Sequence record: MT586120.1
Strand: one strand, 5' to 3'
DNA length: 64,000 nucleotides
Of this stretch, positions 19,316 to 35,607 are shown one piece after another; position 1 is the stretch's first letter; every line of letters begins with the position of its first letter. Under the pieces are notes generated by a model. The model was not told where the DNA came from, did no database searches, and worked only from the letters and a program-made list of their open reading frames with translations. Made by a program: the position numbers and the translations under genes.

Positions 19316-19389
19316 GCCTCAGTAGCTCAGTGGAATAGAGCATCGCTCTTCTAAAGCGTGTTGCGCTGGTTCGAATCCAGCCTGAGGCG
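19316..19389 (+). tRNA. tRNA-Arg(TCT)
   Basis: GCCTCAG/CTGAGGC acceptor stem; loop CT-TCT-AA; GCTGG-TTCGAAT-CCAGC T arm. Confidence 0.9.
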
Positions 19390-19415
19390 TCGTCCAATTA
19401 CTAACATATATAACA

Positions 19416-19571
19416 ATGGGATTACTTTCAGAAAGCGATTACACTCACGCAATTCAAGCACTTGAATACTACCTTGAAGTTTGGGGTAGTCAGTTGAGTG
19501 ATGTTGAGTATATGGAAAAGGAAGCTCTTCTCCGTTGGCTCTACATCAGCAAATCAAAACTAAGTAGCTGA
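19416..19571 (+). CDS. Hypothetical 51-aa protein (not in ORF track)
   Basis: MGLLSESDYTHAIQALEYY...KLSS, read manually. Confidence 0.5.
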   Translation: MGLLSESDYTHAIQALEYYLEVWGSQLSDVEYMEKEALLRWLYISKSKLSS

Positions 19572-19629
19572 TTACACAAGACGATCATCCATATTTACGC
19601 TATACTATCCACATACACAACAAAGACAG

Positions 19630-19821
19630 ATGGCTAAGCAACTCCGTATGGATCTCATTGATGAGTATTACAAGCTATACCGTGAGCGGACTCTATGCCG
19701 TCACACCAAAGATTTTAGAGACAACTACGAAAAGATTAGTGAGCTGTGGGTAGATTTTTCAGAAGAAGAGCGTATCGCAATCAATATACGCTTCATCCAA
19801 GACAACTTGAATAAGTTCTAA
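19630..19821 (+). CDS. Hypothetical protein
   Basis: 63-aa ORF between tRNA genes. Confidence 0.55.
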   Translation: MAKQLRMDLIDEYYKLYRERTLCRHTKDFRDNYEKISELWVDFSEEERIAINIRFIQDNLNKF

Positions 19822-19850
19822 TCTTGTGATATAATACGGTCAACAGACCT

Positions 19851-19923
19851 GCTCCTTTAGCTCTCTGGTGAAAGCACTCCGCTCATAACGGAAGAAAGGT
19901 CAGTTCGATCCTGACAAGGAGCA
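19851..19923 (+). tRNA. tRNA with CAT anticodon (elongator Met or Ile2)
   Basis: GCTCCTT/AAGGAGC acceptor stem; loop CT-CAT-AA; lacks the three G-C pairs of initiator tRNA; own promoter TTGAAT-17-TATAAT at 19807-19835. Confidence 0.85.
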
Positions 19924-19964
19924 TTGACAATCATCACCTTCTCTGGTATGATTGTTTCATCTTC

Positions 19965-20037
19965 GGGGAATTAGCTCAGTTGGTAGAGCGCCTGCTTTGC
20001 AAGCAGGATGTCAACGGTTCGAGTCCGTTATTCTCCA
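19965..20037 (+). tRNA. tRNA-Ala(TGC)
   Basis: GGGGAAT/ATTCTCC acceptor with G3:U70; loop TT-TGC-AA. Confidence 0.95.
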
Positions 20038-20077
20038 TTGACAATCATCACCTTCTCTGGTATGATTGTCTCATCTT

Positions 20078-20149
20078 CGGGGTGTAGCGCAGCGGTAGCG
20101 CATCGCTTTTGGGAAGCGAGGGTCGCAGGTTCGATCCCTGCCACCCCGA
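20078..20149 (+). tRNA. tRNA-Pro(TGG)
   Basis: CGGGGTG/CACCCCG acceptor stem; loop TT-TGG-GA. Confidence 0.93.
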
Positions 20150-20187
20150 TTGACAATCATCACCTTCTCTGGTATGATTGTCGCATA

Positions 20188-20314
20188 AGAGAAGCACCTG
20201 TTAGGATGGTGGTCGCCTAGAATTCAAGGTGGCAGAGGCGGATTACCTCCCGTCCGAGACGAAGCGTTTAAGTTAGTCCTTTGGTAAATGGCAGTTCAAA
20301 TCTGCCCTTCTCTT
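20188..20314 (+). ncRNA. tRNA-like RNA with acceptor stem, T arm and expanded interior
   Basis: AGAGAAG/CTTCTCT stem and GGCAG-TTCAAAT-CTGCC T arm enclosing about 95 nt with at least four hairpins; no canonical anticodon loop. Confidence 0.7.
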
Positions 20315-20320
20315 AAAAAT

Positions 20321-20405
20321 GGAGAGGTGGTCGAGTGGTTTATGGCTCTGGTCTTGAAAACCAGCGAGGTGAAAGCCTCCGTGAGTTCAAATCTCACCCT
20401 CTCCG
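20321..20405 (+). tRNA. tRNA-Ser(TGA)
   Basis: GGAGAGG/CCTCTCC acceptor stem; loop CT-TGA-AA; long variable arm. Confidence 0.95.
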
Positions 20406-20409
20406 CTTT

Positions 20410-20482
20410 GCCTTTGTAGCTCAGTTGGTAGAGCGCGGCTTTTGTAAAGCCGATGTCGCAAGTTCAAATCTTGTCGAAGGCT
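20410..20482 (+). tRNA. tRNA-Thr(TGT)
   Basis: GCCTTTG/CGAAGGC acceptor stem; loop TT-TGT-AA. Confidence 0.93.
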
Positions 20483-20512
20483 TCTATGTATATCATATAC
20501 ATAGTTTTGAAT

Positions 20513-20586
20513 GGGGGATTAGTTCAGTGGCAAAACACCCGCCTCCGACGCGGGAGTCATCGGTTCGAGTCCGTTATTCTCCACCA
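20513..20586 (+). tRNA. tRNA with CCG (Arg) anticodon on an Ala-type body; CCA encoded
   Basis: GGGGGAT/ATTCTCC-A-CCA acceptor with G3:U70; CCCGC-CTCCGAC-GCGGG anticodon arm. Confidence 0.8.
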
Positions 20587-20591
20587 ACCAT

Positions 20592-20664
20592 TGCTCTGTA
20601 ATTCAATCGGTAGAATGCCAAGCTGTTAACTTGGAGGTTGCAGGTTCGAGTCCTGCCGGAGCAG
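20592..20664 (+). tRNA. tRNA-Asn(GTT)
   Basis: TGCTCTG/CGGAGCA acceptor stem; loop CT-GTT-AA. Confidence 0.93.
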
Positions 20665-20679
20665 TTTAAACTTAATATT

Positions 20680-32698: not shown

Positions 32699-33127
32699 AT
32701 GGTAGATTACGAGAATCCCTGGATGTATAAAGGGAGACCTTTTACTACCGAAAAGATAAAAAATTATTATGGGTTCTTATACCTTATTGAGAATAAGCTC
32801 ACCGGTAGAAAGTATGTGGGTAGAAAGTATTTCGTTCAGAAGAGAAAACCAAAAGGTGGTAAGCGTAGAGTAACTTCTGAAAGTGATTGGAAAAAATATT
32901 ATGGTTCTAACGACCAGTTAAAAGCTGATGCGAAAGAGTTTGGTAAAGAGAACTTCAGTAGAAAGATATTATCCCTACACGAAACTGTAGGTAAAACTAA
33001 CTACGCAGAGACAGAAGCACTCTTTAAATACAATGTTTTAAGAGCCAAGATGAAGGATGGTACTCCTGCTTATTATAATATGAATATCTTATCAAGATAT
33101 TTTAAGAAGGACTATTGGGTGGACTAA
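32699..33127 (+). CDS. GIY-YIG-like nuclease family protein
   Basis: YGFLYLIENKLTGRKYVGRK and SDWKKYYGS motifs. Confidence 0.75.
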   Translation: MVDYENPWMYKGRPFTTEKIKNYYGFLYLIENKLTGRKYVGRKYFVQKRKPKGGKRRVTSESDWKKYYGSNDQLKADAKEFGKENFSRKILSLHETVGKTNYAETEALFKYNVLRAKMKDGTPAYYNMNILSRYFKKDYWVD

Positions 33128-33150: not shown

Positions 33151-33858
33151 ATGAAGATTGAACTTAAAAACTTTTTTAAGTATTACAATGATGGCTTACC
33201 CCACCACAAAAATTCTGTTGATAAACTAGCTGAAAAAATTGCTAAATTAGCACCAGAACTTTTGGAAGATGATGCCGAGTGGGTTTCTATCTACAGAAAT
33301 CAATCTGTTGATAACGATGGCGACCAAGAATTAGTATTACCTGTTCTCTACTACCCGCAGACAGACAACTACACACAGCCCGAGAGGACGTGTAATTCAT
33401 CCGCTTGTGCTATGGCTTTGGAATACTTCAAGCCAGGTACTCTACACGGTCCTAAAGGCGATGATGAGTATATTAGGGAGGTCTTCCAAGTAGGAGATAC
33501 TACCGACCATTGGGTACAGACAGAGATTTTAAGAAATCACGGCATTGAATCTACATTCAAATATGATTTAGATTTTGATGACCTTGATAAAGAATTAGAA
33601 AACCGTAGACCTGTTGTTATTGGTATCCTCCACAGGGGACCTCTATATGCCCCGTCAGGCGGTCATATGATTGTTGTGATTGGTAGAACCGAGAAAGGTG
33701 ACTACATCGTTCACGACCCATATGGAGACCTCTACGATGGATATACAAGCACCGTATATAATGGTAGCTCTGCTGTATACGAAAGAAGAGTATTAGAAAA
33801 GAGATGGACGTGCGACGGTAGTCGTTCAGGATGGGGTAGAGTTTTTTTTCCACAGTAG
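33151..33858 (+). CDS. C39-like cysteine peptidase (putative cell-wall peptidase); 0-frame product
   Basis: YYPQTDN...TCNSSACAM (Gln/Cys), GHMIVVIG (His), VHDPYG (Asp); CTAAATA at 33124. Confidence 0.8.
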   Translation: MKIELKNFFKYYNDGLPHHKNSVDKLAEKIAKLAPELLEDDAEWVSIYRNQSVDNDGDQELVLPVLYYPQTDNYTQPERTCNSSACAMALEYFKPGTLHGPKGDDEYIREVFQVGDTTDHWVQTEILRNHGIESTFKYDLDFDDLDKELENRRPVVIGILHRGPLYAPSGGHMIVVIGRTEKGDYIVHDPYGDLYDGYTSTVYNGSSAVYERRVLEKRWTCDGSRSGWGRVFFPQ

Positions 33859-33888
33859 AACCACCTAACTCTATCTTAGGGGTTCTAC
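33843..33888 (+). other. Candidate -1 programmed ribosomal frameshift signal
   Basis: T_TTT_TTT (33843-33849), spacer CCACA, hairpin GTAGAACC-a-CCTAA-ctctatc-TTAGG-GGTTCTAC. Confidence 0.7.
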
Positions 33889-34367
33889 CAAATTCAGGCA
33901 TACAACTAATCAAAGAATTTGAGGGGCTTCACGTCCTAAGAAACGATGGGTATATTCATGCCTATCCAGACCCACTCTCAGGAAATCTACCAATCACTAT
34001 TGGCTGGGGTTCCACTAGAAAGCTGAATGGTTATCCGTTCAAGCTTGGAGATAAAATAACCAGGTCTGATGCTGATGAATTACTAATAAATCAGTTGAAG
34101 GATGAATACTTATCTACTCTAGAAAGAGAAGTACCTTACTGGAGAGAAATGAACGACAACCAGAGAGGAGCTTTGTTGAGCTTCGCATATAATCTGGGAG
34201 CACATTTCTATGGTAGTGCTGGTTTCAGCACAATAAGCCGTGTTCTTCGGGAAAAGGAGTGGAATAAAGTCCCTGATGCGCTATACTTATACCGAAACCC
34301 AGGCACAAGCGTAGAGGCAGGCTTGACCCGCAGACGCATTGCCGAAGGTGATCTTTGGAAATCTTAA
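33849..34367 (+). CDS. GH24 lysozyme domain with no start codon, in the -1 frame of the peptidase
   Basis: Frame open 33840-34367: IKEFEG...AYPDP...ITIGWGST...ALLSFAYNLG...GLTRRRIAE. First ATG/GTG/TTG is at 34095, downstream of all catalytic residues. Confidence 0.85.
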   Translation, partial: STVEPPNSILGVLPNSGIQLIKEFEGLHVLRNDGYIHAYPDPLSGNLPITIGWGSTRKLNGYPFKLGDKITRSDADELLINQLKDEYLSTLEREVPYWREMNDNQRGALLSFAYNLGAHFYGSAGFSTISRVLREKEWNKVPDALYLYRNPGTSVEAGLTRRRIAEGDLWKS

Positions 34368-34368
34368 T

Positions 34369-34788
34369 ATGTTATTACCACTGTTTAAAGAAAGGTTCCA
34401 GGGCTTCTGGAACAACCAACGCCAAGCATACAATGACCCTCGGGGGCAGGCATTAGTTCATGTTATCCATGAGTTTGATGTTGATAGGTATCTATGTTCT
34501 TATAGGTATCGCCGTCAAAAAAATCCATACAGATATTTTGAAGCAACATTACACGATAACGATGGTCAGGTTATTTTAAAAAACCCCGTCCACGATATTA
34601 TGTTTTATGTTCAGAATGGATGTTTTGTAACCAAGTCTAATTTCATTAGCCGTGGTGTGCGTTATATCAATGAAGCCTATCTAGGTGAAAACTATTACCA
34701 CGTCAAAGACCAAGGTTTTGATTTAAAAACTGGGAAGCAAATTTGGGGTCTTGAAGGTGATAACTTCTATGAGTTTGATAGGACTTAA
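34369..34788 (+). CDS. cpeT: CpeT/CpcT-like bilin lyase
   Basis: FQGFWNNQRQAYNDP...NPYR...KDQGFD..TGKQIWG..YEFDR matches the T-type lyase pattern. Confidence 0.75.
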   Translation: MLLPLFKERFQGFWNNQRQAYNDPRGQALVHVIHEFDVDRYLCSYRYRRQKNPYRYFEATLHDNDGQVILKNPVHDIMFYVQNGCFVTKSNFISRGVRYINEAYLGENYYHVKDQGFDLKTGKQIWGLEGDNFYEFDRT

Positions 34789-34983: not shown

Positions 34984-35607
34984 TTGAAATTACTTACTCA
35001 ATTTGCAGCAGTTGCAACTTCACTAACTCTGTCTAGCCTAGCTACATCAACTGTCCCTCAGCTACCCGCTATGGCAGTTGAGACCGAAGAAAAGGCTACT
35101 GTTGTTGAAGCTGAGCCTGTTGTAGAAACTGAAACGCGGTGGGTTCTCCCTACAGCTAATCATGCAGAGACTAAAGTTCTCAATGCATTACAAGATCGTG
35201 GTATTGAAGACCGAAATGCTCTTGCTACTGTTATGGGAAACATCAAGCAAGAGTCAAAGTTTAACTCCAACATCTGTGAAGGTGGTGCTCGGGTGTCTTA
35301 TCATGGTTGCCGTAGTGGTGGTTATGGTCTAATTCAATGGACCAGCATTGGACGCTATCGTGGTTTAGGTAGTCACGCTTATCGTATTGGGATGGATCCG
35401 TCCACGGTAGATGCTCAAATTTCGTTTCTCTTTACCGAAAGGCAATGGAGAGGAATCGAGCCATCACTCAAAACCAATGGTCAAAGCATTGGTTTCTATA
35501 TGGGAAAAACATATTACTGGCTTGGCTGGGGTATACATGGTAATCGTACTACTTACGCTTATCAATATGCTTCAAGGCTTACTAGCATTGAGGTTCCCGT
35601 CACATAA
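34984..35607 (+). CDS. Phage tail-lysozyme-like (Phage_lysozyme2) cell-wall hydrolase with N-terminal signal-like segment
   Basis: ALATVMGNIKQES...GGYGLIQWT motif; TTG start. Confidence 0.7.
   Translation: MKLLTQFAAVATSLTLSSLATSTVPQLPAMAVETEEKATVVEAEPVVETETRWVLPTANHAETKVLNALQDRGIEDRNALATVMGNIKQESKFNSNICEGGARVSYHGCRSGGYGLIQWTSIGRYRGLGSHAYRIGMDPSTVDAQISFLFTERQWRGIEPSLKTNGQSIGFYMGKTYYWLGWGIHGNRTTYAYQYASRLTSIEVPVT

Follow-up and report, generated by a model that had tools for sequence, protein, structure and literature searches.

A peptidase and a lysozyme domain in two reading frames of one cyanophage gene, probably joined by programmed frameshifting

We examined a 64,000-nucleotide window of Synechococcus phage S-CAM7 isolate 0809CC03 (MT586120.1, 100% identity; Kyanoviridae, Mazuvirus; window coordinate plus 124000 gives the record coordinate), in which a two-frame peptidase-lysozyme gene lies on the plus strand at 33151..34367. 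The gene has one change of reading frame between its two domains and no internal stop within either. The frame-0 open reading frame (33151..33858, +) encodes 235 aa from the ATG that is used by all homologues and ends ...GWGRVFFPQ with TAG. The -1 frame is open from 33840 to 34367 (+) for 175 codons and encodes an interdomain linker followed by a GH24 (T4-type) lysozyme domain. Its first ATG, GTG or TTG is at 34095, 58 codons after the catalytic Glu codon (EFEG) at 33921. A run of eight T lies within the 19-nt overlap of the two open frames, in phase with the upstream frame as U_UUU_UUU, and a 13-bp hairpin (8 bp, one bulged A, 5 bp and a 7-nt loop; 33855..33888, +) starts 5 nt after it. Folding with ViennaRNA gave a dG of -16.7 kcal/mol and a z of -4.06, with 0 of 200 shuffles folding as well, and no T tract follows the hairpin. 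The observation in the first-pass annotation is correct in every detail. We note that runs of eight T occur at 8 places in the window, and that the significance of this one therefore comes from its context and conservation rather than from the run alone.

Profile searches assigned the first piece to Peptidase_C39_2 (PF13529; 1.2e-11, 45.8 bits against a cut-off of 24) and the second to Phage_lysozyme (PF00959; 2.5e-19, 70.3 bits against a cut-off of 22.3). In the peptidase, C81, C86, H161 and H172 are invariant across the aligned homologues, and in the lysozyme the E-G, D and T-I-G columns are invariant in 22 fused homologues and are present in the window. A sequence search of the peptidase against solved structures returned nothing, but a medium-confidence AlphaFold model (pLDDT 71) resembled papain-like cysteine peptidases in Foldseek searches, including staphopain, C39 peptidases and the PeiR pseudomurein endoisopeptidase (E about 1e-4, TM about 0.45). 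PHROG families, including phrog_10051, and GenBank records of relatives carry the label 'endolysin', although this assignment rests on annotation only.

To establish whether this layout could reflect an assembly error or a dead remnant, we next compared it with other S-CAM7 isolates and with metagenomic relatives. The three other S-CAM7 records share the layout and annotate only a truncated 72-90-aa 'lysin' or hypothetical protein. A protein search with the peptidase piece showed that the five closest clusters (75-88% identity) are all exactly 235 aa and peptidase-only; their contigs come from at least eight independent metagenome or read-archive assemblies, and the run, the codons that follow it, the TAG and the -1-frame lysozyme are the same in every one. 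Gene callers assign the lysozyme part 110, 108, 144, 163 or 187 aa in different contigs, and there is thus no conserved start. The 175-codon lysozyme frame is gapless and intact in five of six clade members, whereas one contig (L264) carries a deletion in it. Pairwise Nei-Gojobori estimates gave a dN/dS of 0.08-0.17 for the lysozyme frame at a dS of 0.56-2.0, as low as that of the peptidase (0.12-0.18), demonstrating strong purifying selection on a domain that lacks its own start. The junction is also the most conserved 30-nt window of the gene, at 97% against a mean of 78%. A metagenome pattern scan for variants of the run length found only 2 contigs, both with the same layout, and was thus uninformative about population variation; the IMG/VR pattern scan found 1. 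Although the truncated annotation, the deletion in L264 and the single-frame fusions found in the nearest relatives outside the clade could each suggest inactivation or a miscalled run, identical layouts in isolates and in independent Illumina-era assemblies at up to 25% protein divergence, together with the dN/dS of the downstream frame, lead us to reject both explanations.

Phage ACG-2014f and many metagenomic relatives encode a single protein of 398-412 aa with both Pfam domains. The frame-0 piece of S-CAM7 aligned without gaps to residues 1-232 of the 405-aa ACG-2014f protein and the -1-frame piece to residues 231-405, and the two pieces covered positions 1-232 and 238-405 of one 405-position profile, phrog_3617. 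In a low-confidence model of a natural 405-aa fusion (pLDDT 66), which we used for this purpose only, the junction maps to a coil of about 15 residues between the last strand of the peptidase and the first helix of the lysozyme. In-frame fusion without a conserved hairpin, which the first-pass annotation had named as evidence against its frameshifting hypothesis, is found only in these next-nearest relatives and not within the S-CAM7 clade.

To discover how the two domains are connected across the wider family, we collected 240 IMG/VR loci using three peptidase queries, as well as cultured phages, located each domain separately by tblastn and classified 113 distinct junctions. In 74 of these the lysozyme is in the -1 frame with an in-phase X_XXY_YYZ heptamer inside the overlap of the open frames, representing 68 A_AAA_AAG, 1 A_AAA_AAA and 5 U_UUU_UUU (the S-CAM7 clade). 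The overlap is 13-19 nt in 60 of them, and the 0-frame stop follows 0, 1 or 2 codons later (54, 15 and 5 cases, respectively). A further 22 junctions are in-frame fusions, 14 are separate genes with an ATGA stop-start overlap, most of which encode a lysozyme with an extra N-terminal segment of about 50 aa, 1 has a GIY-YIG endonuclease gene inserted between the two genes, and 1 (locus L174) has neither a heptamer nor an ATG. The single apparent +1 case (DSL-LC02) has another gene in between, and no genuine +1 arrangement was found in this survey. The lysozyme frame is open for at least 140 codons with the catalytic motif in 66-67 of 68 A_AAA_AAG types and in 5 of 5 T-run types. In S-PM2, a long-standing model cyanomyovirus, A_AAA_AAG is followed by TAA and an 11-bp stem; its record lists p156 and a 72-aa 'putative lysin', p157, and no record annotates slippage.

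The split relatives raise the possibility that the lysozyme is made as a separate protein, from a non-canonical or nearby codon or by reinitiation after the peptidase stop. Loci of the S-SRM01 type have an ATG just after the heptamer, and one member of the S-CAM7 clade (L016/L020) has an ATG in the -1 frame a few codons upstream of the run. In the window, however, the -1 frame has no ATG, GTG or TTG before the catalytic Glu codon, only ATC, ATA and ATC with no visible ribosome-binding motif, and a stop closes the -1 frame immediately upstream. Of the 74 frameshift-type junctions, 62 have no ATG before the catalytic Glu and 31 have no ATG, GTG or TTG at all. The linker codons upstream of any candidate start stay open and colinear with the fusion proteins. 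We consider separate initiation very unlikely.

We next asked whether downstream RNA structure is associated with the two-frame arrangement, and folded the 55 nt after the heptamer, or the equivalent place in other classes, against dinucleotide shuffles. The median z was -3.2 for A_AAA_AAG forms without their own ATG (n=60; 75% below -2) and -3.0 for T-run forms (n=5), compared with 0.0 for A_AAA_AAG forms with an ATG just downstream, -0.4 for fusions and -0.2 for ATGA-split genes. Stems start 2-8 nt after the heptamer and have unrelated sequences in different subfamilies. In one A_AAA_AAG subfamily of 18 sequences, a 14-bp stem has 98.4% of cells paired and four pairs with compensatory double changes, and only 30-48% pair when the register is slid. 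The evidence is weaker in the T-run clade, in which the outer 7 bp are paired in all 7 distinct members with two one-sided changes to G.U and no double change, and each member extends the stem by its own 3-5 inner pairs. The invariant outer arms also encode conserved Val-Glu and Val-Leu residues, and the excess of synonymous-site conservation at the junction is only suggestive (7 of 13 against a background of 0.30, P=0.06).

Taken together, and on comparative evidence without protein, RNA or read-level data, these observations support the proposal of the first-pass annotation that a programmed -1 frameshift yields a peptidase alone and a peptidase-lysozyme fusion; we favour this reading with fair confidence. 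In this model, ribosomes reach the in-phase U_UUU_UUU and are held up by the stem-loop, the presumed stimulator. Most stay in frame and terminate two codons later at UAG, releasing the 235-aa cysteine peptidase, whereas a fraction slips back one base, with both Phe-tRNAs re-pairing perfectly, and reads on to produce a 405-aa peptidase-muramidase. The further suggestion that recoding sets the stoichiometry of lytic activities remains a hypothesis; every architecture (fused, split or frameshifted) supplies both activities and differs only in linkage and ratio. Slippage of RNA polymerase on the T run would give the same protein and is not excluded for this clade, although we regard it as unlikely. 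It is favoured by the homopolymer itself, as rU:dA hybrids are probably slippage-prone, and by the observation that U_UUU_UUU is a comparatively weak ribosomal shift site in E. coli, in which A_AAA_AAG is far shiftier than runs of A or U (PMC5009743). However, a hairpin at the canonical 5-nt spacing has no role in polymerase slippage, eight T is shorter than the nine or more that appear typical of used slippage sites, and the sister branch solves the same problem using A_AAA_AAG, with only six A, and covarying hairpins.

The arrangement can be compared with several known frameshifts. E. coli dnaX (tau/gamma) also places an in-phase tandem-slippage heptamer a few nucleotides upstream of a stable stem-loop to make two products that share an N-terminal part, and its heptamer, A_AAA_AAG, is the one used by the branch that includes S-PM2. 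In dnaX, however, shifted ribosomes terminate at once and give the shorter product, whereas here they make the longer product by adding a whole enzyme domain; the S-CAM7 clade uses U_UUU_UUU, and no upstream Shine-Dalgarno-like stimulator was established. In the tail assembly chaperone genes of long-tailed phages (lambda G/GT type), a -1 shift near the end of ORF1 likewise extends it into an overlapping ORF2 without its own start, giving a short and a long product at a fixed ratio, but that gene family acts in virion assembly rather than cell-wall hydrolysis; here there is a strong downstream hairpin, and both fused and split architectures also exist among close relatives. In IS3-family OrfA/OrfAB, a -1 shift, often on A_AAA_AAG with a downstream structure, fuses two functional domains encoded in overlapping frames, although the product is a mobile-element transposase whose ratio regulates transposition and the proteins are not homologous. 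The mechanism proposed here is known; the gene class, cell-wall hydrolases, would be an addition to the short list of phage genes that use it. We found no report of frameshifting in a cyanophage lysin or in any endolysin gene in the literature searched, which lacks most subscription journals, or in a term search of the 2016 recoding review. The existing annotation of the lysozyme in S-CAM7 and S-PM2 as a truncated, catalytically meaningless fragment needs correction, and gene callers will systematically mis-split this gene in marine and freshwater viromes. Close relatives with fused, frameshifted and split versions make it a good system for asking why a fixed ratio of a short and a long product is selected.

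To study the origins of these architectures, we built a neighbour-joining tree of the peptidase domain, which is rough as it rests on about 220 residues. The T-run clade is monophyletic and nested among marine in-frame fusions that mostly lack any slippery heptamer, whereas A_AAA_AAG forms dominate the other main branch (S-PM2, freshwater and estuarine contigs). At least two independent origins of frameshifting at the same linker are the simplest reading. It is somewhat more likely than not that T4-like cyanophages evolved -1 ribosomal frameshifting at least twice at the linker of a bifunctional peptidase-muramidase, and that lineages switch repeatedly between fused, frameshifted and split states, with recoding acting as an evolvable dial for the ratio of two cell-wall-degrading activities. 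On this view, it would be the first programmed frameshift described in a phage lysis enzyme, overlooked in the annotation of a model phage since 2005, and ACG-2014f-type fusions may run the same signal in reverse, shifting to a nearby stop. The A_AAA_AAG-dominated branch shows repeated switches to split or fused states, and two fused junction types in it still keep the hairpin.

The two-frame peptidase-lysozyme gene is also present in the model phage S-PM2 (NC_006820.1; genes p156 and p157, positions 1195-2378 of the extracted locus), in which it carries A_AAA_AAG, TAA and an 11-bp stem. The record lists a 231-aa hypothetical protein and a 72-aa 'putative lysin'. Among single-frame fusions, the gene of phage ACG-2014f (KJ019107.1; locus 1315-2532), as well as those of two further loci (L043 and L045), carry an in-phase A_AAA_AAG in the linker. 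In these fusions the -1 frame has a stop one codon later, and an 8-bp hairpin sits at a 5-nt spacer (dG -11 to -15). This may be the reverse, dnaX-like arrangement, in which shifting would give the short peptidase; the z-scores are modest (-1.2 to -2.5). One member of the T-run clade (L264, a contig from JGI 3300068284; gene region 1280-2384) keeps the run, stop and hairpin but has a deletion of roughly 110 nt in the lysozyme part that removes its N-terminal catalytic region, and is either a decayed variant or an assembly artefact.

The peptidase ORF ends in TAG, and we note that the first gene of a tRNA cluster at 19316-20665 of the window (19316-19389, + strand) is a well-formed tRNA (Rfam tRNA model, 64 bits) with anticodon CUA, which would read the UAG stop; GenBank labels it tRNA-Pyl(cta). 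Only 5 of 51 long + strand ORFs in the window end in TAG. Read-through of the peptidase stop in frame 0 meets further stops within 16 codons and thus cannot reach the lysozyme domain.

Immediately upstream of the peptidase gene lies a SegE-type GIY-YIG endonuclease gene (32699-33127, + strand; Pfam 1.7e-49). In three freshwater contigs (L081, L083 and L092), a different GIY-YIG endonuclease gene (2318-3091 in L081; Pfam 3.5e-09) is inserted exactly between the peptidase and lysozyme genes. In the window, a second muramidase-like gene (34984-35607, + strand; Pfam Phage_lysozyme2, 'phage tail lysozyme', 1.8e-14) with a hydrophobic N-terminal segment lies 600 nt downstream, and a CpeT-like gene (34369-34788) sits in between. 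Across the whole window, runs of eight or more T (or A) number 13 overlapping matches at 8 places, against 5.4 expected from shuffles, and most are A runs on the coding (+) strand.
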